From: Perkinsus chesapeaki ATCC PRA-425
Lineage: Eukaryota > Protista > Perkinsozoa
NCBI GenBank assembly: GCA_013115145.1
Contig: JAAPAO010000249.1
Coordinates: forward strand, 1 to 47,078
Length of the DNA: 47,078 nt
Reading direction: 5' to 3'
A program made the translations under genes and the position numbers. Of the stretch, positions 4,711 through 47,078 are shown piece after piece; the stretch's first letter is position 1, and each line of letters opens with the position of its first letter. A model generated the notes under the pieces. It searched no databases and was not told the DNA's origin. It saw nothing but the letters and a program-made list of their open reading frames with translations.

Positions 4711-7700
4711 ATGTCATCCATAGCATCACCTGGTCCGGCAGCACAGACTCCAGCTAGTAATATATTGGAGATGTCTGATAGGATAGATGCTAGAATGGGA
4801 AGAAGTCCAGGTCAGATATTTTAGCTTCAACCTTGCAAGATGCGGATGAGGTTAACTTCAGGCAGCAGTATGGGTGTCGGTAGCGTCTTTAGAAGTTTTC
4901 GTAGCGATATTGGGGACCTTCGATTCACCATTGACTTTGAGGAAGAGAGCAATGGAGGGGGAGCCACTGGGGTGAGTTTAGGGGGGTGGATAGAATTTAT
5001 TATCGTCTATAGTCTGGTAATGCTACTGGTGGTGATACTGCAATGGGCGGTGACGACGTCCATGGTGGAGAGGAAAGGCTATTTGGTAGTAGTATACCGA
5101 TACATGAAGCAAGGACTTTATTTATGAGATTCTTGGATGAGTAATATATATGGAATGACGGGTTAATATAGTAATAAGTGGTAATAGGTTTGATAAAGGT
5201 GATGATGGTAGAGGGAAATATGGCAGGGAATTGCTAAGGTAATAATAAGATATAGGTAGGAGGGATAATATAATACAGTACTACACATATATAGGGGTAT
5301 GGTGATGATAAGGGATAATGTTTATTATTATAATATTAATAGTTATAACTGTTATTAGGTTTAGTGAGAATAAGCAACAGATATTTCCAGTGGATGCTCA
5401 GGACCTTCATCAATTCTCACCGGAACTGTAATAATCAACATTAATTATTATAATATATAATATTAATAGATATTCTGATCTTATAGCATCCCCGACAGAG
5501 ATCATTCCCGTCATGGATGCATGCGTAATATATATTGAACCATACCGCCGCTCTTCAATTTAATCATCATCATCATTCAGCTCTACAATCACATTGTTCG
5601 TAACACTCCTGGCATCAACCCGGCGGCCGCAGTCGTACAGGTGAAGTGAATAAGGCGGAGCGAAGTGTTTCATATTTGTATTTTTGGTAGGTTCAAATTT
5701 ATAACCTTCTTGAGAAGGACAAGAGGACAATGAGGGACTTTGATCCTTCTGATATAGAGCATGTAAGTATCCCAAGTTCGAACCCCAGTGGAGGCATTTT
5801 ATTTTAGTTGGTAGCGTTAAGAGGCATTGCCATTCGTACATCGGTTTTGATACCTGATATGCAAGTTGGAGCCTTCCGATGCACTACAGAGGGTTGTGGT
5901 CATCATGTTAGTGTTAATCTAGAGAAAGGTAATAATATTAAATTATACCAGCTACCAGTCTACACTTAAGGTCGTATTGATGAGCCAACAACATGCCCAA
6001 AATGCCACCAGAAACAATCTTTTGAACTTGAACATAATCAGTGTGTGTAAGTGATGGGTGTGGAAGGGAGAGATATAGTTAATGTTGATTGAGGTTCACC
6101 GATAAACAGCTTATTAAGTTACAGGAGTCACCAGAGAACATTCCTGAAGGAGAGACCCCACACACTGTTATGATATATGCGTAGGTGATGGATGCCCTTA
6201 CCGAGGATCGAACCGGCGTGGTTATGATCAGGTATGATTCTATGTTTGATACAGTAAAGCCTGGTGATCGTGTTGAAGTTACTGGTATCTATAAGGCCTC
6301 CCCTCAAAGGGTTATATTACAACAAAGGCTAACAAAGAGCATCTTAATGTATCCACAACTGCTGCTGCTGTTGCCCATTGGTATTGCCTAGGTCCTATAT
6401 CGATGCCATCCATATTAATACATTGGGTGCATCTGGTAAGAGTGTAGCTGCTAATATTGGAGTGTTGGATAATGATATTGAGGAAGTAAGGGGATAAGGA
6501 GGAGGTGGTGAAGCTGTTTTGATAGGAATTACGTAAACTGGCTGCCGATCCTAATATTGTTGATAATCTAATTAAGAGCTTTGCGCCCTCTATTTGGGAG
6601 AATGAGGATGTAATAATATAGATACAACCCCATCCAGGGATAGAACCAGGGACCTTTGGATGGTTAGGTTAAAAAAGGATTACTCTGCCAACTATTTGGT
6701 GGAACTGACAAATCAACTGCTGGAGATACTGAAGCTGAGGATCGTGGATCGTTCAGGTAGTTGTGTGAGGCATTCGAATGGTAAGGTGTTTCAGGAGCCA
6801 ACTCAATGTCTTGCTTATTGGTGATCCATCAACGGCAAAGTCACAACTACTGCAGTATGTACATAAGATAGCTCCTCGAGGGTAGATGATGATGATGAAT
6901 ATGACAATAATGTTTGTGCTATACTCGTTACTTTTTAGTGTGTATACTAGTGGTAAGGGCTCATCTGCTGTGGGTTTGACAGCTTATATAAGTAAAGACC
7001 CAGATACTAAGGAATTGGTAAGTGAAGGTGGAGGCTGGGTGGATGGGTGTAATGGTAGGAGGATAGGTACTGGAATCGGGTGCATTAGTGTTGAGTGATA
7101 AAGGTATCTGTTGCATTGATGAATTTGATAAGATGGATGATCATGCAAGGTAGAGGGCGAAGGTTCGATCCCTGGTATCGGTATTTATAGGGCAATACTT
7201 CACGAGGTTATGGAACAACAGACAGTATCGGTGGCGAAGGCAGGTATCATATGTAGTCTTAATGCAAGTGAGTATCTTAAGCTTAACCATGCAAGATACG
7301 AAGTAGGTCAAGTGATGATCTTTGGTCAGGAACCGCCATATGTGCTGCTGCTAATCCCATTGAATCCCGTTATGACCCGAGGCGTTCTGTGGTTGACAAT
7401 ATCAATCTAAATCCTACTTTATTGAGCCGCTTTGATCTTATCTATTTGGTAATACTTATACTTTAGTCAGTCGTCACCTTATCCTCACTTCTATTCAGAT
7501 ATTAGATCTTGGTACAGAGCGTAGTGATCGTACTCTTGCCAGTCATATTGTTAAATTATTCTCCAAGTTGGATGACGATGCCAACGATGCCACACAGTCG
7601 GCAAATACACCACCATTGGACTTGGAGACCTTAGCAAGGTTGTTGCTTCATTATCATTTAATGATATAACATTCTTGAGTAGTATCATTAGATATATTGC

Positions 7701-8473
7701 ATTTGGTCGCTCATTAAAGCCTCGTCTCACCGATGCTGCTTTGGAGGCGCTCACTGATGGATATTTGAAACTGAGGCATTATAATACAAGTGGAGCTGTT
7801 GGTGAGGCAGTTGATAATGATGACGTGGGTTCGAATCCCAGCGGGGGTATTTTTAGGAAAGACTATTACAGCAACACCTCGACAGTTAGAGTCCCTCATT
7901 AGATTATCAGAAGCATTGGCCAAGATGGAGTTCAGGGAAGAGGTGGCGAGTGCAGTAAAGGTGTAGTGGAGGGGGGCAATGGTGTATTATAGGTAACTGG
8001 AGATGATGTATTAGAAGCTATAAGATTGATGAAGGAAGCTTTGTTATCAGCATGTAATAGGTTTGCTATTATCTATGATGATGATGACGATGTGATAGGT
8101 ACTGATCCTGTTACTGGTGTTATCGATATGTCTATGTTGGCTACTGGTATGAGTGAAAGTAGAAGACAGGAGAGGGAGACTGCATTACAGACAATTAAAG
8201 AACTACTACAAGCATCACCAACAGGGGTACATTATTATCAAACAAGGAAGAGTTATGCCGAGGCGCTCTTGTTAGTCACTGAAATATGATATCCTACGAC
8301 AGAAAGTGTTTGAACAATTAGTGGCTCCTCCAACAGCAGCAGCAGCTGCAGATGAGGGCGGCGGATATAGTGGTGATTATCATCATCACCATAATGCCGA
8401 TGCTTTGGATATACATGATGTTGGTAAATTAATTGATAATCTGGTAAGAATCGGGCCTTCGATGGGCCTCTAG
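4711..8473 (+). CDS. MCM4: DNA replication licensing factor MCM4, many exons (3' end approximate)
   Basis: [104 protein letters not shown] and [21 protein letters not shown]. The ESPE..PHTV and ENEDVKKG segments are MCM4-type. Confidence 0.92.
5771..5800 (+). other. tRNA T-arm/B-box-like fragment in MCM4 intron (5763-5807)
   Basis: CCCAAGTTCGAACCCCAGTGGAGGCATTTT. Confidence 0.55.
6193..6222 (-). other. tRNA T-arm/B-box-like fragment in MCM4 intron (6181-6231)
   Basis: Minus strand ACCACGCCGGTTCGATCCTCGGTAAGGGCA. Confidence 0.6.
6627..6659 (-). other. tRNA 3'-half-like fragment in MCM4 intron (6610-6667)
   Basis: Minus strand CCAAAGGTCCCTGGTTCTATCCCTGGATGGGGT, resembling the variable loop/T-arm of eukaryotic tRNA-Phe (AAAGGTCCCTGGTTCGATCCC). 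Flanked by a CCATCCA/TGGATGG inverted repeat. Confidence 0.55.
7159..7186 (+). other. tRNA T-arm/B-box-like fragment in MCM4 intron (7150-7190)
   Basis: GAAGGTTCGATCCCTGGTATCGGTATTT. Confidence 0.6.
7822..7854 (+). other. tRNA T-arm/B-box-like fragment in MCM4 intron (7802-7856)
   Basis: GACGTGGGTTCGAATCCCAGCGGGGGTATTTTT; the first 21 nt are identical to the copy at 20971. Confidence 0.65.
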
Positions 8474-9231
8474 CGATGATGATGAAGTATAATTCTTGTA
8501 CAGCTATTTATTGTCTCACTACTTGTATTTGTAAGAAGACTGTAGGCGGTTTTTGCATTCGCCAATAGTACATCGACAAAAACTATATACTAGCCAATAT
8601 TACTATTGGCTGCGTTATATTATTTCATCACTCGAACATGCATCGATGTTTAGGTTCAGAATGGCACCCTGGCAAGGATAGGCCGAGGGCCAACAGCAAC
8701 ATGCCGCCTGCTGGAGTTTGATGCTTAATTATTATTATCCTTCCCATTCCACTGCACGTAACAGCCAAAAGAACATATCATCGTCATCATGATTATCATC
8801 ATCATCAATATTAATTATTTTCCCCATACTCCCTTGTTGAGTATATAGTTGTCATCATGTTCACACTACTTATCATTGATGATGGTATGATGGACTGTTA
8901 TTGGATTATTAAATGTCAAACTCACCGAATATTATCAGTACGTCGTCACCGTTTAAATACGCCTATGTCATCATCATCACCTCATCATCATCAGAGTTCA
9001 TCACAACTTGGTGGTAGCGGTGGGCCGACCACTAAGTGATATAGGAATTATACCAAACTTAACATCATATCTTTAGTGCATCTGATCAAGCAGCTGCAGC
9101 CGCCATACGAGAACGATCTGAAAGATCTGGACAAGAGAGATGTAACAGTATGATGGAAAAGTAAACAACCAGTGCAACTAAGGTGCAATATATCGAGTGT
9201 CATTAATCAGAGTCGCTATTGAGGCATATAA

Positions 9232-9768
9232 GACAATTCCTGGGGTAGAGTTTGATGGCGGAGCATTCAACTGGGATAACAGCAGCACTTTCAAGTGATT
9301 AAACAAGTCCAACTAGTTTAGGTCAAATATTCTTATTTCAATAGATACGTTTTGATGGAAATCGATGATCCTGTGGGGAGCGAAGGGGAAAGTCGTTATC
9401 TTGTACGTGGATTGACTTGGGCAGAGTATCATCAGGACTCTGCAAATCCAAGCATTGAAGAGCTGGAAGCTGCTGGTCTACGGTGGAGGATTTTAGTACT
9501 TAATTGGCATATTCAACGCTCTGTTATGAAGTGTCTCAGGGTGGTGGTCGAATAAAATATAATGCAATGGATAAGTCAATGAAGATTTATGGACATAGGT
9601 GAGCTGATCTCACAGGAGGATCCTCTTATAATCGATGGTTATTATGTTTCTTTCAGTTTTGGATTCCCTTGGCCAAGTGGCATTTACCGGCACGATATTA
9701 GCGAGAGAGTTTGCAAAGAAGAGCTTAAAGATGATGTGACAATAACTCATTCAGATGAAGGTTATTGA
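9232..9768 (+). CDS. PHPT1: 14-kDa phosphohistidine phosphatase (Janus/Ocnus family); 5' exon(s) from ~8970 unresolved
   Basis: Spliced TIPGVEFD..TFK|YVLMEI..YLVRGLTWAEYHQD..RWRIL|GGGRIKYNAMDKSMKIYGHS|FGFPW..VTITHSDEGY* matches the PHPT1 motifs FKYVL, VRG..WAEYH, GGGRI, VYGYS and the terminal DGY. Confidence 0.85.
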
Positions 9769-33853: not shown

Positions 33854-34720
33854 TCATGATGTCACATGCTGTTGTCCTTCCTCTTTCAGACTGGCCCCCA
33901 CCATCATCCATTCTGGTTTATCAACTTCAACCTTAAGGTCCTTCCTAATCACCTTTAAACCATTTAATAACATAACTCGACCTAAACATGATCAATACCA
34001 CCACCACGATCATCATCATCATCAACATCTCCCTTCCTCCATCCTCACCAAGTTGTGTAAAGTGATTATCAAATATCCATATTTTATCAAGTCTAGGTAA
34101 TACACTAGTGGACTTACAACACAGTCTACTTACTAATGATTGTACCTATTTATTATAACTAGTACTTTCAATAATCATCATTATTACTACCCCAATATCT
34201 TTTATATTATTTGAACTTAGATCAATAAATGTAACTGTATTATTATGCCTTTCTATTAATATATCAATAAGTGTATTTATAAAACTATCATTAATACTGG
34301 TATATGATAGCCTTACATCGCTTATTGTACCATCCTCAGCCTACCCAATAATAACAACAACAACTATCTACTGCTAATGCTACTGCTACTGCTACTGCTG
34401 CTACTGCTGCTATATTACATTTATTATATCTTTCCATCTTTTAGATTCAATAATAATCTTATTATTTACCTCAGTATTATTACTACTTGTATCCATTTCA
34501 TCCATATAACATTGTGGATTATTATATTCACTATTTTTAGGATATTCGGTTGTATACCTTATAATACACTCCAACATACACCTCCTTATAAATTATACTA
34601 CCATGGTGCTTTATCAGGATATTTACCATTATATCCATTTATAATATTATCTCTTTTATGTATAACATTATTCATAGCATCATTAACCTTACAGTTCATA
34701 ATGTATCTTATATTAATAAT
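33854..34720 (-). CDS. Leucine-rich-repeat (RNase-inhibitor-like) protein, partial model; 5' end probably nearer 35000-35200
   Basis: Exons VRLSYTSINDSFINTLIDIL, TFIDLSSNNIKDIG, LDKIWIFDNHFTQLG and RVMLLNGLKVIRKDLKVEV..HVTS*. Confidence 0.5.
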
Positions 34721-35219
34721 AAGTAATATATTAATTATTATTACTATTTACTCATCTCTCTTTTTATTATCTATTAACTTATTATCACCCTCTTTACTTC
34801 CCTCATCGCCATATAATGGTTTATTATTATTATTAAGAAAGCCTTTATTTAATATCCTCCTATTGCCAGCAGCCCTTCCTCCTCCTCCCTTAGTAGGTGA
34901 TAACTCCTCAATAATAACCATATTACTATTAATAATTATAAATAACACAATATTATATATCATACTAGGATAATGTGATGATGATGTTGATGCTTTTATC
35001 TTCTACTACTTGAAACTTGATTTATCAGGTATTGTTGTAAGATAGGTTAATAACAATAATAGTAATTATTATAAGTAATAATGACGATTATCACCTTAAT
35101 TCTGTTAATGCTGGTAAATTACTGTTATTGTTGATATAATCTATCATATTTACTCAACCTTAACCGGAAACCTGTATAATATTATCAACTTATTATTATT
35201 AATATTGTATTTACCTGTA

Positions 35220-36306
35220 TTATCTTCCTCCTTGTCCTGCTCCTGCTGCTGACCCTAACCCTAATAATGTATTCTGCTTTTCAGGTATATACATAACATT
35301 AGGTGACTTAGCCAATGTCTCAGCAATCTCACGTGCAGCATCAATCCTTCTAACCTATCATCAACATCATCATATATAATAATAACAGTTTTTACCTCAA
35401 TAAGACCAGTACCATGTTCCTTTAATGCCTTAGATATCATCTTAGCTGCTTCAGCTTCACCTTCAGCCTTAATAACAGTAGCAATCCTCTCCTGTTCGGT
35501 CTCTAACAATAAATATGAGTATCCTACAACTAAATATTATCTACTTACTAGCAACTACGAACTTCTGTCTTTCAGCTTCTTGTTCAGCAACTTGCTTCTC
35601 TTCAATAGCCTTAGCAAACTCCTTACCATAATTTAAATGGGTTATAGCAACATCATCCAATGCAATCTAATGATGATATTAATCAATATAATGACTGCCA
35701 TATTGTTATTACATCAAATGCTTGACATCTATCAACTACAGCATTTCTTATTTCGCGTGATACTTTCTCTCTTTGTGTTAATAGTTGTTCTGCATTATAA
35801 CGAGCCACTACTGCTTTTAAAACCTCATTTCCAACTGATGGTAATACTCTTTCAGCATAATCAGGTCCAAGCGATTTATGTATAGCAGGTAAACGATCAG
35901 CAACAGGACGATATAATAGCCTTACATGTATAGTAGCCATCTGTAAATCCTTTGTACCTATTATAATCATTAATAATATTAATAATATCAATAATACTAC
36001 CTGTTGTTGTTTGGATAAGCTTTGGTTTAATCTGTATTGAATATATTTGTGGCCGTTGAAACCAAGGTACTCTCACATGAGTACCTTCACCAAATATTTT
36101 ATCGGATACACCTCCAAACACCTGAATATCTAAGGTTAAACCGTGCAAGATACATAATAGGTTACATTCCACATAACAGCTCGTTGTCCACCATCAACAT
36201 TAAAAAGACATGTATTGCAGAATAAACCGACCCCTCCTGCACCGAATGCTGCTAAAGCCAATCCAGATAGGAACTTATCAGCTCCAGCTGATGATGCACT
36301 CGCCAT
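35220..36306 (-). CDS. PHB1: Prohibitin 1
   Basis: [102 protein letters not shown] and [23 protein letters not shown]. Confidence 0.93.
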
Positions 36307-36458
36307 TCAAGAGGAAGGAACAGCAACAACTATTAAACAATACATCCAACTAACAACAACAACGTGATTCACGAGCATTATGGTAAAAGCGCGCGCCATT
36401 CTAATCGATTTGCTGCGCACCTACTACCTACTGGGCTTGGTTATACAGGTTTGAAGTG
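36307..36458. promoter_or_regulatory. Putative bidirectional promoter between PHB1 and CASP
   Basis: Only 152 bp between divergent ATGs, with a GC-rich island (GCGCGCGCC, GCTGCGCAC) in AT-rich surroundings. Confidence 0.5.
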
Positions 36459-38981
36459 ATGGAGGGGAATGTTGAAGTAGATGGGGATAAATGGAAGTAA
36501 TAATAACTTAAATATAATATTAATGATATTATAATTAGATCCCTTAACTTTACATTATTATTGGAGGAGATGGCAAATTCTATTAATTTAATGGTACAAT
36601 CAAGAAAACGTAGTTTAGAATCTAAAAAACAACTTGCTGAACATACTAGTAAGTTAATATATAATAATATATTAACAACAACTTAGAGATATTTCAAAGA
36701 CAAATATCAACATCTGATCATGTACCATTTGGTGCATCAAATGATGAAGAATGGAATGAATTATTAAAGGAATATCAATTAGAGATCGATACACTTAGTC
36801 GTAGGGCAAAACAAGCCGAAACATCATTTAATAAATTATATGAGTAATAATATTATTATAATAATATAATATCCCTTTAAAGGTTACTTAAACCTTTACC
36901 TGATCCAGTAACATTTATACAAAGCACTGATTTAAATAATGTTATGAAGATAAAGGACGATGAGATAGGTCGGCTACATAATAAAGTATTAATAATAATA
37001 TTATCATTAATAATGTGTTATTAGTTAAATGATCTAGAGAGTGAATTCTCAACACTTACCAATCAAGCTGTTACTGTACGTAAATTGCGTGAAGCATTAA
37101 ATGATAAGGATAATGATATTAATAATAAGATTGACGAGGCATTAATAAAACAAGAGAAGGATTTTATAAAACGAATGGAGAATAATAAATTAGAATATGA
37201 AAAAGAATGTGAAAGGTTATATAATGAATTGGTTAATGAACGGCAAAATATTAAAGTATTAAATGAACGTATTAAAAGTAAAGATGAAGAACATATAAGA
37301 AATAATAAAATAACTGATGATACTATACAAGCATTAATGGCAGAAAATGATACATTATCATCAGTAATAATCATTATATATAGAGTTAAGATATAATTAA
37401 TTATTAGGATATAGATAGGTTGACAGCGGAGATTCAGACGTTAAATATAGAAATTAAATTGAAGGGAAATAATAATGAAGTTAATAATGATGTTAATTAT
37501 AAAAGGTAATAATAATTATTACTATTATAGTTTGGGTTAGTAAGGGTAGTATCAGGTTAGTGGATGAGCTTGAGTATGAAAGAGAACGATGCGAAACATT
37601 GAACAAAGAAATGGATGAATTAAATAGGGTTAATAAAGAATATGATAATATTATTAATAATATGACAGAGAGGGAGAATAAACTAAAGGAAGAATTAATT
37701 ATAAAGGAAAGGGATATTAGTATGGCTAATGAACAAGTTAAACGATTAAAACATGTAAAGGATGAATTGGAAAAGTATGTAAAATATTTAAGAGTAAAGT
37801 TTGTAGGGCCCAATTCTTGTTGTTAGGTGTAAATCCAAGCTAAATGTGATGGAAATAGTGGAATATAATGCCAACCCTGCTGAAGGTACAACTGATCTAG
37901 AAATAATGTTATTGGGAAAGGTAATGAATATTGATAATATAATGGTTATTGTTGATAATAATAATAATAAGGTAAGAAGTTTAGAAGGTCAATTGGCACC
38001 TCTTAGAGCTAAGTTATGTGATTATGATGATATAAAAGTAAAGTTAGAAGAGAAAGTTAAGGAAATACATTTATTAAAGGATTTATTGGAGAAGGTAGAA
38101 AAGTATAATGTTATAATAGCAAATAATAATATCTTAAATAATATTCATCAGGGCAGTGGCAGTGCTGATGGGGGTGAAGGTGGTGATGGTGGTGGTGGAT
38201 TAGGCAGTATGTATCAGCACAGTATACCTTATAGTAAAGAAGAAGGGACACCATCATTATTGGATATAACTAAACAACAACGTGATCATTTAAAAAGTAG
38301 AGTATTATCATTAGAAGCAGAAAGGGATACATTAAGAATTGATATAAGTGAGAAATGTAGAAAATGTGATAAATTATATAATGATAATATTAAGTTACTT
38401 GAACAAAAAAAGTAATAAAGTTTTATTATTAATAATAATAATATTAATAATAGATACTGGCAATCTATGAGTAGTAGTGGTAATAATATGATAAATGTTA
38501 AACATAGAAAAGGTATTAAATATATTATATGGGAACATGATAGTAATAAATAGGTCATATAGTAAATAGTGATGATGATGATGATGATGATGATGACCAA
38601 GGAGTCGAATGTGGTGGTGGTGGTCGAGATGTGGAAATGATATATATGCCTGCTTATAATGAAGAAGTTATATTATCACCATATGATACATTTAAGAATA
38701 ATGAAAGACAAAAAAGGTTAATGGCTTTACCGAAAGGTGAAAGGATAATTGTAATAATATTATTTATTATTCTGATATTATTATTAATGCAAGGTACAAG
38801 TTTTAACAATAATGGTTGGTAATAGATTTATTAGGATAATAACTGGTATATATCTTGTAGCTTTACATATGTTAGTATTTATTGTATTGTAATAATAATA
38901 ATAAATACTAATTATCATAATAGTAGATACAAATTGATGCGAATATCTTTAACCTATGACAAGACGATAAATGATATATAA
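36459..38981 (+). CDS. CASP: Protein CASP (CUX1 alternative product/Coy1-like golgin), multi-exon
   Basis: KEYQLEIDTLSRRAKQAETSF, LPDPV, EFSTLTNQAVTVRKLRE, SLLDITKQQRDHLKSRVLSLEAE, LYNDNIKLLEQ, LSPYDTFKNNERQKR and a His-containing C-terminal TM IYLVALHMLVFIVL|YK. Confidence 0.85.
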
Positions 38982-39193
38982 TAACCACATAATGTACCAC
39001 ACATTTCACTATTATTATTATCATGGGTTGTGTTGCTATTTAATATACTAAATAACTAAATAATATATATTATTAAATTAGTATATAACATTACAGTTCA
39101 GTCGTAAGTAATGGTGTTAGTAAATGTTAACTTATAATCATCCACTTTAATTAGCCACGCTTATTCCTTATTCGTATTCTTGATGATATATTA

Positions 39194-39804
39194 TTATACC
39201 TGGAACACCACATCTATTATTCGATATATAGTGTAGGTATAGTAATGATAATACCGTGATGGTGTTGATAATGACCGATATCGATGATGATGTTGATGAT
39301 GTTTATTATCATCATACCTTTTATTAATTGATCTTCTTCGTTTATATTGTTCTTCATACCATAATGAGTAGTGTGTACCATTATATAATTCATTAATAAC
39401 AACATTAGGTTGATTAGCTCTATTAATATCTAATTGATATATACTACCATATGTCCCTGATGGACTAGTATATGGTCTTATATCAATATTATTAATAATA
39501 TTATTATATTTACGTGGCGGCCAATATGATGTTGATAACATCCATGGTAGATCTTCACGCCATAACCTAATATAACATATTAATATTAATCAATTAACCT
39601 AACAATTAATAATACCAACCTTCCCTCTGCCCTTTCTATATAATTATCTTTATCAATACTATGACCATATATACAACTTGGTATTAATAATGTACTTGTA
39701 TTACTGCAATACATATTATCTAAAGGTCTATTCATCCCACCACTATTAGACCATAGAGGTACACCACTGTGACGTCCGATTGGACGCTGACCGTATGATG
39801 ACAT
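39194..39804 (-). CDS. Hypothetical protein, multi-exon
   Basis: MSSYGQRPIGRHSGVPLWSNSGG..ERAEGR|LWREDLPWMLSTSYWPP|RPYTSPSGTYGSIYQLD joins in frame across GT-AG introns. Confidence 0.55.
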
Positions 39805-39889
39805 TATAAGGAGGAATGCTTAACGATGAATATATTGATAAACAGAAACATAACATAAATAATATTAATGACAACAATGGAAATGTATT

Positions 39890-42800
39890 TTAATTTTTTT
39901 TCATTATCATAACTACATTTTGTCGACATAAAGGGCATACTTTACCAGCATTTGATGATAAAGCACAGGAATAACAACATACATTATGACCGCATCTTTC
40001 AAGACGACAATCGACCGCATTATTGTAACAAATCTTACCTACAACAATAACAGCAATATATATTATTATATAATGTTATTACATATATTATTAGGATCAA
40101 TAGTGGTATTGTTATTATCTCGTATTAAATTATCAATAGTATTAATCTTTTTATGTGGTGTTCTGAATGTTGATAATCTAGCTCCAATGACAGAAGAAGA
40201 TGTGCGCCGTCGTCCTCTATTATTTACTGTATTAACAACTTGATATATAATGTTATTAATAATACCTTTCTTTTTAACTTTATCATCAATTTCGGATTTA
40301 TTATTATTCCCTAAAAGAGTATTGATATACCATACTGTTGGCATCATCATCATCGTTATGCTGATATGTGGTGTACCATCAATATTATCAAAGTCCTTTA
40401 AACGCTCCTCTGCTGTATATACCTCCACACTTAAAGGTAATCTTGTAGTAGTATTATGATCTAATGTTATTAATTTATTTAATATTATAACTTATATATT
40501 TACCTTCATTATTAGTATACTCTTTATTATTATTGTTTATTAATAGTAACGATCTATTTATACGTTGTAATTCAGCTTGAAAAGGTCCACCAATAGTTGA
40601 TACACCATAACAAAGAACATCAATAATATACATTGCTTGAGGTGATGGCAAACCATCAGATAACACCCGACGTATCTTAATATAATAACGAATGTGAAGG
40701 AGTTATTATTATAATAGGAATTAATATTAATACATCATCTTCTCTATATCCTTGCCATGTTAAATCTTTTGTTAAATTATCTTTAATACTTCTCATGAAA
40801 GTCTAAACATAACATTGTAATATAACAACATATTCATCATCATCATCAACTACAGGGAGCTGAAAGGAGGATGATGTTGATTCCCCTTCTTTTTCTTCAG
40901 TTGATGATGATGATGTTAGAGCTTTATACCTTGCCAACTAAATAATATATTATAAAATAAATATTATTATTAATGTTGTTAACTACTTTAAAGTTCTCCA
41001 TCATCTTATGTCTATTTATGGCATTTTGTATACTTGTATTACTATTATTGTTTCGTTTAGATAATGTTGTTGTTGATTTGCTATTTCTGAACCCGGTAGT
41101 AGTATTATTATTGTCATCAGCTTGGTTCGGAATATCTTTATTTCGTGGTTGTATACCTATTACAATCATATCATTATAATTACTACTACTTAGTTAACGG
41201 TAGTAGGTTAGTAGTCCCAGTAGAGGTAGTAGGTATTACCACGTTTTTGAAAATAATTAACAACTTCTCTCGGTATCTCCTCTAAAGTAGCTACAGCTAA
41301 TTCTTTATACCCTTTATCTTTATATTCATTAAATGGTACAAACTGCACCTTAAATGATAATAATAATAATAACAGGGTGGTTTCCAATAAATAATAATAA
41401 TAACGATTATTAATATTAATATATTACTATATCTCTTTCCATTGAGCAACCTGTCTTACTTGACACTAATAATGTGTCATCTGAATCTAATAGTTCCATT
41501 TGACTAAAATCACCATCACCAACACCAACCTAATAATAATATTAAATATAATAATATGTTTTAATAATATTAATAATACAATAATAATTGACATAGGTGT
41601 TTTACTGCTTTCAACTATCTCATCAATAGTATCATTTATATCATCAATTGAGCCATCGGTAATAAGTAATAATATGAAATATTTTTGTTCAGCGTTGGGG
41701 TCGATCGGTATTGGTAACTATTTATAATAATAGTACCACTACAATAACAAATATAATAATAATAGTATGATGTTGATAATTACGCCTTTATCATCAACCA
41801 ATTCACTCATTTGAATACTATATTCATTTGACCATTCTCTGCATACTTTAATAACTTCATGTAATCTAGTTGGTCCATGTAATGATGTTACCTACTATAA
41901 CTATATTATTATTAATAATAAATTATTATAATAATATAATCTTAGCTTGTAATGCTTTTCTATAAGCATCTATAATACCATCAACACCGAATACTTCTGG
42001 ATCAAAGAAGTTACCTTTAAGACTAAAACAATCACCTAAATAACAATAATCAATTATTATCATCATCATTGATGTTGTTGTTGTTGTTACTATAAAATGT
42101 GTATGTTGGTGGTAGTTTAGCACCAAACCCGAATACTGGATATTTTCTATCAGAATCATAATTCTCAAGTATCTCACCGACACTTCTTATAGCCATAACC
42201 TGATGATGATGATGATAAGCATAATTCATATAGAGAATATGACATAGTCATTTGGAATACTAGTATCACAATTATGTAATGAATTGTTGTATCTCGGATC
42301 ACCATTAGATCTTGTAAAATCAATACCAACCAATAAACTAACTTCAAGTCCTCTGAACAATAATAGTTACTAATTAGTTATTATTGTCAATAATAATACT
42401 ACTACCCTAATACATAGTCTAAGAATGAACATCGCTTTTGAATGGTAACTTGTTCAATATTAAGGTATCCAACTCTTCTTGGTGGTGGTTCAATAATTGC
42501 TGCATCGTCGTCTTGTCGATATCTCATATCATTACTATCATCACGATTATTATTGAATAATAATGCTACTCCTCTCTAATAAAGATAAGCACCACTTATT
42601 AACACTTCTTCTTCTTGTTCTTGTTATTACTTTAGTCATATTTATTATATGTTTAATAATATTGAATGATGATGATGGTTTAGGGTCATAAAGTGATAAA
42701 GTTAAATGACGTTTAGTTATAAATACCCGATAAAGATCATTATATGTTATACGACATACACCCATAAAATCACTTTCACCACTTCTATTCCAATCATTAA

Positions 42801-44346
42801 CCTATAACCAATAAGTATAAATGATAGTATTAGTAGAGTATGACCTCGATGTAAATATATCTATTCTCATCACCATGACAAAGTTGATGCATAGATAATT
42901 GAAATGTATCCCATTTAGGTGTTAATGTACTCATTATTGCTTCTGATTTATATATTGGTACTATCTAATAATAATATACCAACAACAGCAACAGCAGCAA
43001 CAACAACAACAACAACAACTTCAGCAACCCATAACGGCAATCCTTACAGTATCATCTTTAGTATAATTAAATGCATTGATCTCTCCTCCTCGTCCTCCTT
43101 GTATTAATGCTGTTCCCCTATTCATTACACCACCAGTACCAATAGTATTATTAACATGTGCTCTTTTGGATATACTATTTGATCGATATATAATAAAATA
43201 ACTACTATGAAGCTTATATGTAAATAATATATTATTAAATATTATATCATTATTACGGATCACTTGATCTCGATATTCTGTCTTTTATTGGTAAATCTTC
43301 AGCCGTTATCTTAATTATCTAATAATATTAATACTATTATTATTCAACTATTATTGTGATTATGATGGTTTGGTCTATAATATTACAACTGTATCTTGTA
43401 CTTTATTAAGTTCACTTGTATGAATAATAATATCCCCAATATAATTCTTATGCGTTTCGCTACTATACGATGTTGTTGCTGCTACAGCAGCTTTTTTCAA
43501 TGCTCTTCTATATTCGCGTTTACTTCTTGCTGTTGATGAGGTTATACCCCCACCAACTACCTAATACATATGTATAATGTTATTAATAATATTGTTTAAT
43601 ATTACTTCACCTATTGTTGTATTAATTAATCCTATTAAATCTTTATCATATACTTTATAATTATTATTATTCGACACTACGGAGGGATTAGGGCAATTGT
43701 AGAGATTGAATTGTAACTAGTATTATCAGCATCATTAAAAGCAATAATACCAATAATAATAATAATAATACATAAGTTTGTCTTTCAAATACATAATCCA
43801 CTATAATACTTTTAACAAATCTTGGAGATTGTGTGCTTGTAACTACTTCTGTCCCTAAATAACAATAATACTAGTACTATGTTATCATCATTAGTATTAT
43901 TATTATAATGATTACTACTTCCTATTTCTTTCCAAGGCCCATCTTTATCAATACTAATCTTAACTATTATTAAACAATTATCTATAATATTATTAAGTTG
44001 TATTAGTATAAATAATACTAGCTACATTTCTTTAATAAATTAACACATATAACATTCATTTCAACCTTGCTTGATAATTCTCCACCATCTTCAATTCCTG
44101 ATCCTATCCTTGGTATGTTTCTTTCTAATTCATCTTTAGAATGTTGCCCTATACCCGCTGCCCCTGTTATATAGTCTTCATCATATTGTCCTATTATTAT
44201 ACAATTAATACTATATGTACTCTATTTATTATTATTATATTAATACTTCCTTCTAGTGTTCTTGTAGCAAATACTGCTGCATCATTAATTTCAATTTCTT
44301 CTAATTTTGCATCTCGCGATCTTATAGCGCTTTGGTTGCTACCCAT
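39890..44346 (-). CDS. Copine (C2A-C2B-vWA) with an N-terminal myristoylation motif and a C-terminal RING-HC finger
   Basis: MGSNQS start; C2[35 protein letters not shown]; C2[35 protein letters not shown]; v[54 protein letters not shown]; RING C|[30 protein letters not shown]. Confidence 0.85.
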
Positions 44347-45474
44347 TACTATTCAAATAACGAATTATTATCATCATAAACATTGATGATATCCCAATCA
44401 CCATTAACAACAATAAGAAGCTTGATGAAGATATAATGATAATAACATTATATATATCAACAACAAGATGAATAATGATTAGAGGGGGATCATCGTAGTA
44501 ATAATAATAATATCATCATAATCATACTTGATCAATACTCGATAGTATTATTATTATTCATTATATTAACATTAAATATCTCATCATCCAACATTAAATG
44601 TCCAATAAGATGTGTCATATCGGTTGTATAAAGTTCAAATGGTGGTGATATTATTATTCCCTCATTGATTACAATAGTACGAGTATTTATACCAAAGTAT
44701 ACAATATAGATATCTTTAATATCATTCTATCCTCCTGCTTTATTATCATCATTTACTATTATTATTACATTGCATTGTAATAATACACGTGGTCTAAGTA
44801 TTATATTAACTACTGTATATCAATCATAAATATATGAGTTGCCTCTGTTGTCGGAGGTATGACAGGTATAGACCTTATCGATGTTATATAATCCTTATTC
44901 ATACAAGTATTATAAATTATAAATTTAATATCTATCATAGGCATAGGTGTTTCATCAATATCAACATTCAATATATTAATATCATGTATACCACATTTAT
45001 TTATTATTCATTGTAGTAGTAGTAGTCTGATGATGATGCTGCTGCTGTTGATGTTGATGTTGTTTCATTCAAACACCGCCAGTTTAGTTGGTCTATGTTG
45101 TAATATCTCTTTTACAACAACTCATTTGTCCAGTTCTTCCTCGACTTAACATCAACAGTACCAATAGTATCTTGTATTCTGATAATATATTAATATACCA
45201 ATAGTAGGCCATACATCATTATAATTAATAATACAAAAACACTAACTAATGGCCTGCTGCTGCTGCTGGTGTTATTGTGAACCAAACATCATTATTATAT
45301 ATTATTCTTTAGAAGCTACTACTATACTGTTCCCCTTTATAATACTGCTCGTAGGCTGCAACATCATCAACATCATTATCATCATCATTATCACTTATAG
45401 TTATAATTGGTAATAATAGCTACTTCTATTATTAATAATAATACAATAAGTTATACAATAAGTTGCCATGAATA

Positions 45475-46591
45475 TTAATGATAGAATTCACTATTATCAC
45501 TACTACTACTTGCATAATCATCCATAGCTATATCCTCTCTACTTGTTTGGGACCATACACTACTTTGTTGATCATAATCACTACTACTGTGATGATTTAA
45601 TATACGTCTGTTTCTTATAGTGCCACTCCTTTTTATACCACTTCCATTATTAATAATACTTCTATCAGACTCATCAGCATCACTAGATCCATAATACCCC
45701 CCACCACCAGCAGCATTATTAACCCCTATATGGCCACTCTGCTGCTGATGCTGCCCTCCCCTCGGTGATGATGATGATAATAAATCTTGCCTACTACTAC
45801 CTCTACTACTTAATAACATCATATCATCATCTTCACCTTCTGAACCCGTTGTATGTCCATGAACATACCGTGATGTTGCCTTAACGGCAAATAATAATAA
45901 TCCTATATAATAATAACCCTATATAATAATAGAAATATTTATTATTACTTTTATGTTTATTATCATTAAAAAAATAATGAAATTGCCATAAATGTGAACC
46001 AGAATCATCATCAGCTGCAGTAAGCAGACTTAAATCATCAACCTATAATAATATATATATTAATATATTTAATATATTATTACTAGTTCATATACTTCAG
46101 TATCAATAAAACTAATACAGCTTTGAACTGCACCCCATAATTCGGCAACTAAGCCTGGTTGTGCTAAATCTAATGATGTACCAAAATATTGATTAACTTC
46201 ACCTATTAATAATATTATATATTAAATCCCCTATAGTATTATTAATATTACTAACAACCTCCCCTGGATCCTCTTTTTTAACAAAATGTTCTGGGCTTAA
46301 TGTATTAAATTGATAATCAGGAAATGTTTCATTTAATGCTCCTATTAATATAACCAATAATTGTCTTGAATGTAACGCAGATAATGGTCCTAATGGTGAT
46401 GATTTTAATAAATGTGGAGATGTAATTATCTCATTATTTAAATTCTTTTCAATAGATAATGGTATATCTTTATTATTTATTAATAATGTATTAAATAATT
46501 CTAATCTACAATCTAATCGTAGATCAGCTAAATCAAGTGAGTTTATTCTTCCAGATATTTGCCGTAACTTCTGATTATCGATCCACTGCAT
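45475..46591 (-). CDS. MAF1: Repressor of RNA polymerase III transcription MAF1, with a Ser/Gly/Asp-rich tail
   Basis: GPLSALHSRQLLVILIGALNETFPDYQF (Maf1 B-box region), VVSNINNTI, LWGAVQSCI..EVY and LWQFHYFF (C-box). Confidence 0.88.
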
Positions 46592-47078
46592 ATTGATATT
46601 GATAACAACAACTACTGAATAATAACACCATCATCATACCAGACAAGATAGCAACAACAAAGATCTTATCATTCCATCAACGACGACGCTGTTAGATGAC
46701 ATGTGTAGGATAACTCAAGTCTCCGTGGGTAACCGTCACTAGGACCGGTAATTATTCTTATTATATACATCGTCATGCTTACTCTACTAAATCGAGCATA
46801 TCTTACGGTTTCTATGATACGCGAAGCGACGCATAAATAGGCGAAGCGACGCGTATGCTAACACTCCGCGGGGGCCAGCATACAATATACACTGACAGTG
46901 TAGTGTAAAGCAGGAGTGAATTAGGTCATCAAATATAGATGCAGCGGGAATCACATAAGCGGCAAAGTAAACGCAAGAAATGCCGACGGTACTTTCTTGA
47001 GGTTTCCGAGGAACTCGCGCCGCTTAGTCTTTCCTTCAATTACCGCTACGTGGCCGGATTCGATGGACACGATTCGGT

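Follow-up and report, generated by a model that had tools for sequence, protein, structure and literature searches.

We describe a gene on the minus strand of a 47,078 nucleotide stretch of Perkinsus chesapeaki ATCC PRA-425 DNA (contig JAAPAO010000249.1, here called the window; all positions are those of the window unless another locus is named). We are confident that it is a single intact gene and a member of a family of RING-tailed copines, with a myristoylation motif, two C2 domains (C2A and C2B), a copine-type vWA (von Willebrand factor A) domain, a module of three helices, a disordered Asn-rich spacer and a RING finger predicted in this order. Canonical copines have the architecture C2-C2-vWA (PMC10968396) and plant RGLG ubiquitin ligases the architecture myristoyl-vWA-RING, with RGLG1 being myristoylated (PMC7155146). 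An initial annotation, made from the DNA sequence of the window, had described both layouts in the same way.

The minus strand of this eukaryotic region breaks up into many short open segments, and the gene model was built by enumerating frame-keeping GT/AG pairs between successive coding segments and then summing the exon lengths. Calculations spanning several exons covered their lengths, phases, base composition and split codons, and the searches and folds were done with single exons or with natural relatives. The model begins with the ATG at 44346-44344 (MGSNQS), three codons downstream of an in-frame TGA, and ends with the TAA at 39892-39890. It has 24 exons and 23 introns and a frame unbroken by stops, with a coding length of 3156 nucleotides (1052 codons) and a phase arithmetic that closes at 0. 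The introns are 43-83 nucleotides long, 22 out of the 23 being GT-AG introns (GTA/GTC...AG ends) and one a GC-AG intron, and the guanine plus cytosine (GC) content is 31% in the coding sequence and 20% in the introns. A 1052-codon open frame in DNA of about 28% GC is far beyond chance.

The start at MGSNQS, the stop and the joining of the exons in frame stand as the initial annotation gave them, and all five junctions it named are canonical splice sites in the correct phase. These are FQKR-G-IQPRN (41240/41156, split codon G+GT), FQLP-TFMRS (40854/40802), YREDD-IRRVL (40734/40675), NE-D-HNTT (40504/40460) and DPNNI-C-KICYNN (40083/40038, split codon T+GT, which is Cys). At the last of them, the first RING zinc ligand is the codon split T/GT by the last intron, and therefore the finger is complete only in the spliced message. 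The sole GC-donor intron is intron 14 (41946-41892, GCTAAG...TAG), whose counterpart in Perkinsus olseni begins with GT. A GT donor for intron 14 was sought and none was found; the GC donor was accepted because the exons on both sides are conserved. For exon 3 an acceptor at 43963 was rejected in favour of 43981, which the orthologue in P. olseni and the family alignment, by its length, both support.

Each exon was compared by tblastn with a P. olseni locus (JABAHT010000201.1, GCA_013115115.1; L007 in the following). We found that 22 of the 24 exons match L007 in order and on one strand, with agreeing lengths where the match spans the full exon. The start exon (MGSNQSAV) matches at 66% identity and the RING exon, at the other end, at 68%. 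The remaining two exons are also present, exon 3 having been located by eye and exon 20 solely via its FQLP motif. Identity to P. olseni is 65-86% in the domain exons and 30-45% in the low-complexity linkers (37% in exon 23). About 12.7 kb of the window (33900-46624) correspond to about 15.6 kb of L007 (4083-19709), a block of six completely collinear genes with the same flanking genes; the locus in L007 is the orthologue. The window gene is real and very probably one intact, spliced gene of the Perkinsus lineage.

The gene annotations available for P. olseni are incomplete at this locus (L007:8001-13037), which holds the partial model FOZ61_003357. The public model KAF4661351.1 (543 amino acids, 'Copine C-terminal domain-containing protein') is without the eleven N-terminal exons and has neither the predicted myristoylation motif at the start nor the C2 domains. 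It also misses the RING exon (L007 12897-13037), because the model reads into the last intron. That both gene ends are absent from the public P. olseni model is a practical by-product of this comparison.

Pfam Copine (Pfam: PF07002) is matched by five exons, covering profile positions 12-214, of which three exceed the 27-bit cut-off alone; these matches were confirmed by a six-frame scan. Copines normally end soon after the vWA domain, whereas this gene continues for six more exons and ends in a RING. The last exon by itself matches zf-C3HC4_3 (Pfam: PF13920) at 3.7e-9 and carries eight of eight zinc ligands, (C)KIC-x11-CGH-x3-CYSC-x9-CPLC, in agreement with the RING ligase pattern C-x2-C-x(9-39)-C-x-H-x(2-3)-C-x2-C-x(4-48)-C-x2-C, together with the Ile after the first Cys (C-x-I-C), the Pro in CPLC and an Arg after the last Cys. 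At the N-terminus, MGSNQSA fits the pattern M-G-{EDRKHPFYW}-x-x-[STAGCN]-{P} and myristoylation is predicted. The MG start is shared by 24 of the 42 Copine plus RING proteins listed, the majority of the remainder being evidently incomplete at the N-terminus. Myristoylation had been counted among the RGLG-like traits of this protein, but it is not specific to RGLGs, because the copine BON1 requires it as well (Li et al. 2010, cited after PMC12167975).

Pfam searches with the single C2 exons gave no convincing C2 match (the best weak match was exon 9 with an E-value of 0.067), and PDB sequence searches with exon 9 or exon 4 alone gave no significant match; the C2 assignment rests for this reason on relatives. 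The most informative relative is P0171 from MMETSP, a complete transcript open reading frame (ORF) on an intron-free contig with Pfam matches to C2 (two stretches), Copine and zf-C3HC4_3. P0171 is collinear with window exons 4, 9, 10, 12, 13, 18 and 24, and exons 4, 9 and 10 match it at 1.7e-5, 6e-11 and 1e-5, either within its Pfam C2 matches or next to them. Such matches to relatives establish that two C2 domains precede the vWA domain. Folding P0171 with an alignment of 51 sequences gave a model with a predicted local distance difference test score (pLDDT) of 82 and a predicted TM-score of 0.73. In this model a short N-terminal helix is followed by two beta sandwiches (residues 35-166 and 173-334), the vWA domain (348-582), a long helix, a compact three-helix module (622-667), a disordered spacer (687-773) and the RING.

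The initial annotation expected a calcium/phospholipid-responsive membrane ligase and pointed to the Asp ligands of the C2 domains as the place to check. Of these ligands C2B retains most and C2A none. In its sequence, C2B keeps four of five calcium ligands: both Asp of loop 1 (KD..SSDP) and two of the three loop-3 Asp (D-W-N..D), with a D-x-N loop-3 pattern common to BON1 and the Balamuthia copine P0197. Copines generally bind membranes in response to calcium (PMC10968396), and together with C2B this would suit a classical calcium-triggered copine, in which both C2 domains bind calcium and reversibly move the ligase to phospholipid membranes. We nevertheless consider this doubtful here. C2A keeps no ligand: compared with copines, where loop 1 has D..SDP, its loop 1 lacks five residues and contains no Asp (LLKKYNC), and its loop 3 reads LYNCPNP where copines read YD(I/V)D, both being nearly family-wide features. 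Moreover, the last C2B ligand is also lost in the P. olseni orthologue, and the conserved Gly2 motif predicts a constitutive rather than transient attachment to the membrane.

The metal-binding residues of the vWA domain are better preserved. The MIDAS (metal ion-dependent adhesion site) is complete, with IDFTRS in exon 12, GPT in exon 15 and ITDG in exon 16, and its columns are invariant in the 51-sequence alignment. In addition, the vWA motif YDSD aligns at the sequence level, through P0171, with FYDSDKRFP of BON1, that is with D388/D390 (6kxk_A index plus 19). D388/D390 form a high-affinity, nanomolar calcium site in the BON1 vWA domain which is needed for BON1 function (PMC12167975). The best-preserved predicted calcium site of the protein lies in the vWA domain; any calcium response would better be placed there and in C2B than in C2A.

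An all-library HMMER search with exon 16 was run and P0104, one of its matches, was then used as query of a word search. The exon 16 search found two P. olseni fragments at 78-80% identity and several Copine plus RING proteins. Among the 120 clusters listed for P0104, there are 12 with C2 (Pfam: PF00168), PF07002 and PF13920 and 23 more with Copine and RING, most of the latter with 700-840 residues. Family members come from P. chesapeaki itself (FOL47_000101, P0174, with the UniRef name 'Copine-8'), P. olseni, Blepharisma stoltei (P0182) and Amoebophrya (P0178, from EukProt), as well as from MMETSP and transcriptome shotgun assembly (TSA) transcripts marked 'type:complete'; one JGI product name is 'Copine/Zinc finger, C3HC4 type (RING finger)/C2 domain'. 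A literature search found no paper describing a C2-C2-vWA-RING protein, and the 2024 copine review mentions none. RING-tailed copines are an uncharacterised family, widespread in alveolates and visible in databases. The architecture had initially been called the strongest protein-level novelty in the window, a claim that was to be dropped if the architecture proved common in databases; it has to be dropped, because 12 of the 120 listed clusters already combine all three domains.

The assembly contains a second RING-tailed copine, on a contig labelled C2 here (5058-9560, minus strand; 47% GC), which is 72-97% identical exon by exon to FOL47_000101. There is one orthologue of the window gene and one copy of this paralogue in the assembly. 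The 90% cluster of the P. olseni protein P0001 also lists a 55 amino acid 'single-stranded DNA-binding protein, partial [Thaumarchaeota archaeon]', which is probably eukaryotic contamination in that metagenome-assembled genome or a clustering artefact.

Between the vWA domain and the RING, the three-helix module encoded by exons 21-22 aligns in every family member examined. It reaches a pLDDT of 94-97 in the full P0171 model, and three helices are also predicted when it is folded alone (pLDDT 71). No Pfam model matches the module block up to an E-value of 10, and Foldseek returned nothing significant for the module (E > 1). Among the best 50 rows of VIA-align, about half are UBA, CUE or SOUBA domains (UBAP1, N4BP1, Dsk2, Rad23, NBR1, XIAP and others), with a top Z of 5.0.

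The order of Gly2 motif, C2, C2, vWA and RING in one gene was proposed by the initial annotation, which took transcripts ending between vWA and RING as speaking against it. The collinear P. olseni locus, the split RING codon and the complete transcripts of relatives support one gene with this order. Two proteins of P. olseni, P0001 and P0269, contain the vWA-linker and FQLP-TFM junctions. Two adjacent genes, an ordinary copine ending past VVNYFQKRG in intron 18 (stop at 41211) and a RING protein starting from the ATG at 41169, are for this reason very improbable, even if reading through intron 18 leads to a stop after 10 codons, similar to a normal copine C-terminus, an ATG is indeed present at 41169 and genes are tightly packed, with the next one about 86 nucleotides past the stop. 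Intron 18 carries GTAATA..TAG signals like the other introns and the P. olseni proteins read FQKRG-IQP.. across its site. The ATG at 41169 falls within intron sequence, and the five codons beginning with it are unconserved. Throughout the family, complete transcripts included, a single ORF contains Copine and RING, with the same three-helix module connecting them.

The gene lies in an AT-rich part of the window: the gene region has 27-30% GC and positions 34000-47078 have 27-33%, compared to 33-43% in the first 33 kb. A copy that is decaying or drifting fast in an AT-rich compartment, and possibly losing function, could account for a locus of about 28% GC against 46.6% in the P. olseni orthologue and about 47% in contig C2 of the same assembly, for the Asn-rich insertions in exons 8, 19 and 23, for the GC donor where P. 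olseni has GT, and for the degenerate C2A and the low-complexity expansions. We give this hardly any credence: no stop or frameshift occurs over 1052 codons in stop-rich DNA, splice sites are usable in 23 of 23 introns, the MIDAS, YDSD and RING residues are intact, drift is confined to the linkers while the domain exons keep their 65-86% identity to P. olseni, the gene is the only orthologue in the assembly, and the degeneracy of C2A is family-wide, not local. That the AT-rich contig belongs to a second organism in the assembly was rejected, orthologue and paralogue being present in a single copy each.

Several points nevertheless weigh against a single intact gene with the functions suggested here. 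The gene model in this organism is read from genomic DNA alone, and statements on the whole protein derive from single exons and natural relatives instead of the joined protein. The borders between exons 8 and 9 and between exons 10 and 11 are provisional, as they sit in poorly conserved sequence, and one of the gene's 23 introns uses a GC donor. The unusual AT-richness and the Asn-rich insertions may reflect relaxed constraint in the linkers. The predictions of E3 activity, of myristoylation and of lipid and calcium binding all come from motifs, and C2A is without any canonical calcium ligand. Finally, the module is possibly UBA-like, with Z values of at most 5 and no significant Foldseek or Pfam match.

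Table 1. Exons of the RING-tailed copine gene in the window, their predicted domain content and the comparisons on which each assignment is based.
Feature	Positions	Strand	Evidence
Whole coding span, ATG to TAA	39890..44346	-	24 exons, about 1052 codons; collinear P. olseni orthologue at locus L007
Exon 1: predicted Gly2/Ser6 N-myristoylation motif (44329-44346); remainder N-terminal helix	44247..44346	-	P. olseni MGSNQSAV
Exon 2: N-terminal stretch of low conservation, then first strand of C2A	44026..44190	-	74% identity to P. olseni within the C2A stretch
Exon 3 (corrected start): C2A strands	43919..43981	-	P. olseni NYMIVANTRRTGDDPWEELAR, equal length; fits family alignment
Exon 4: C2A core	43772..43854	-	E-value 1.7e-5 to P0171 residues 73-97; 78% identity to P. 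olseni
Exon 5: C2A loop 3, LYNCPNP in place of copine YD(I/V)D, no acidic ligands	43606..43716	-	P. olseni and family comparison
Exon 6: end of C2A and linker between the C2 domains	43387..43560	-	Exon model, P. olseni match
Exon 7: beginning of C2B (first strand, loop 1), both loop-1 Asp kept	43257..43318	-	75% identity to P. olseni
Exon 8: C2B strand (YFIIYR) and Gly/Asn-rich insertion	43048..43201	-	3' border provisional; same loop disordered in P0171 model
Exon 9: C2B core	42845..42964	-	Weak Pfam C2 (E-value 0.067); 6e-11 to P0171 residues 236-273, within its Pfam C2 match; 65% identity to P. olseni
Exon 10: C2B loop 3 (Asp, Asn, Asp) and last strands	42631..42801	-	P0171 match 1e-5, P. 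olseni; 3' border provisional
Exon 11: low-complexity stretch, then C2B-vWA connector	42406..42575	-	Exon model, P. olseni match
Exon 12: vWA start, MIDAS D-F-T-R-S (42307-42321)	42244..42352	-	83% identity to P. olseni; columns invariant in family alignment
Exon 13: vWA, Y-D-S-D (42149-42157) aligning with BON1 D388/D390	42091..42199	-	Copine 6.4e-10; 86% identity to P. olseni
Exon 14: vWA, then GC-donor intron (41892-41946)	41947..42035	-	Pfam Copine, P. olseni match
Exon 15: vWA, LHGPT (MIDAS threonine)	41784..41891	-	P0171, P. olseni, family alignment
Exon 16: vWA, MIDAS aspartate	41580..41717	-	Copine 5.3e-11; 80% identity to P. olseni
Exon 17: vWA	41428..41529	-	Copine 1.1e-6; P. olseni match
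Exon 18: vWA end	41240..41348	-	Pfam Copine, P0171; 81% identity to P. olseni
Exon 19: Asn/Thr-rich linker, IQPRN to HKMMENFK	40987..41156	-	P. olseni P0001 across the same junction: FQKRGIQPMKPK..HKQMQAFK
Exon 20: Ser-rich linker ending FQLP	40854..40937	-	..AFQLPTFMKD in the P. olseni model P0269
Exon 21: helix 1 of three-helix (possibly UBA-like) module	40734..40802	-	61% identity to P. olseni
Exon 22: helices 2 and 3 of module (40568-40675), then Asn-rich tail	40504..40675	-	86% identity to P. olseni, tied highest in the gene
Exon 23: long low-complexity spacer; last base is the T of the first RING Cys codon	40083..40460	-	37% identity to P. olseni; RLS(T/S)FRTPHKKI and TIDPNNI conserved
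Exon 24: C3HC4 RING, (C)KIC..x11..CGH..x3..CYSC..x9..CPLCR, then TAA	39893..40038	-	zf-C3HC4_3 3.7e-9; 68% identity to P. olseni L007 12897-13037

Besides the RING-tailed copine, the surroundings contain a small gene on the minus strand (39377-39804) about 86 nucleotides past its stop, which is conserved at L007:13230-13639 and unannotated in P. olseni. Further members of the collinear block are a Band_7/flotillin-like gene (35268-36308), with 90-97% protein identity to P. olseni, and another RING protein at 33902-34816.

The product of this gene is likely a RING E3 ligase anchored by myristate and C2 domains, with the vWA domain selecting the target. In such a mechanism the protein would be held at the membrane by its myristate and its C2 pair, and the MIDAS face of the vWA domain would engage a substrate or partner in the way BON1 and RGLG do. 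The RING would recruit a ubiquitin-charged E2 and ubiquitinate the partner bound by the vWA domain. Calcium control, if there is any, would more probably act through C2B and the Asp-x-Asp site of the vWA domain than through C2A.

Copines are conserved from protists to humans, their membrane role is still debated and the members described are without an enzymatic domain. A copine body fused to a RING suggests a concrete output, the ubiquitination of a vWA-bound partner, and the family forms a natural link to the RGLG ligases of plants. It includes shellfish parasites (Perkinsus) and parasites of dinoflagellates (Amoebophrya), organisms with few characterised E3 ligases, and for this reason provides a testable membrane-proximal ligase in them. 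A bolder reading is that RING-tailed copines are an old eukaryotic design in which the copine itself is the ubiquitin ligase, that the RGLGs arose from it when the C2 pair was lost, and that the three-helix module is a new UBA-like ubiquitin-binding element coupling a calcium-sensitive vWA domain to the RING. We regard this as improbable and put it forward as speculation; if true, copines, whose biochemical role is unclear, would gain a direct enzymatic output. The value of the finding is limited by an architecture which is already visible in databases and by functions which are all inferred.

The nearest database entry to the window gene is the P. olseni model KAF4661351.1, annotated without the C2 and RING parts. 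The C2, Copine and RING proteins P0174, P0182, P0178 and P0171 share with the window gene the domain order, the MG start, the degenerate C2A and the three-helix module. Compared to these, the window gene is a separate paralogue, 30-45% identical outside the vWA domain, and its protein is longer (about 1050 residues versus 710-870) because of the Asn-rich insertions.

A similar C-terminal layout, a UBA followed by a zf-C3HC4_3 RING, is known from the IAP ligases cIAP1/2 and XIAP. The cIAP and XIAP RINGs are the best solved-structure matches of the RINGs of exon 24 and P0171, and the module is weakly similar to UBA/CUE folds, among them the XIAP UBA and cIAP1, with Z values of 3.6-5.0 and no sequence similarity, which makes this a resemblance of layout only. 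Unlike the IAP ligases, the window protein has no BIR domains.

The Arabidopsis copine BONZAI1 (BON1; PDB: 6KXK/6KXU) has the myristoylated N-terminus predicted here and the same C2A-C2B-vWA order, MIDAS, vWA Asp-x-Asp site and C2B D-x-N. A difference is the loss of loop-1 and loop-3 aspartates in the C2A of the window protein. Like every copine described, BON1 stops shortly after the vWA domain, whereas the window protein continues for about 400 residues with the three-helix module, the spacer and the RING. The plant ligases RGLG1/2 (PDB: 6K8x, 8HMG) share the Gly2 signal, the copine-type vWA domain, the C-terminal RING of the zf-C3HC4_3 type and the vWA calcium sites (PMC7155146), but they have no C2 domains where the window gene has two. 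With the P0171 model, Foldseek finds the BON1 crystal structure at an E-value of 9e-50 (34% identity over about 598 columns) and the RGLG vWA domains at about 1e-14 (27-28%). By sequence, P0171 matches BON1 at 5e-83, including both C2 domains together with the vWA domain, and RGLG1 at 7e-21. The RGLG vWA domain scores 77 bits over 230 residues and BON1 C2B plus vWA 229 bits over 346 residues. Both kinds of score place the predicted vWA domain of the family much nearer to BON1 than to RGLG1, RGLG2 or RGLG5.

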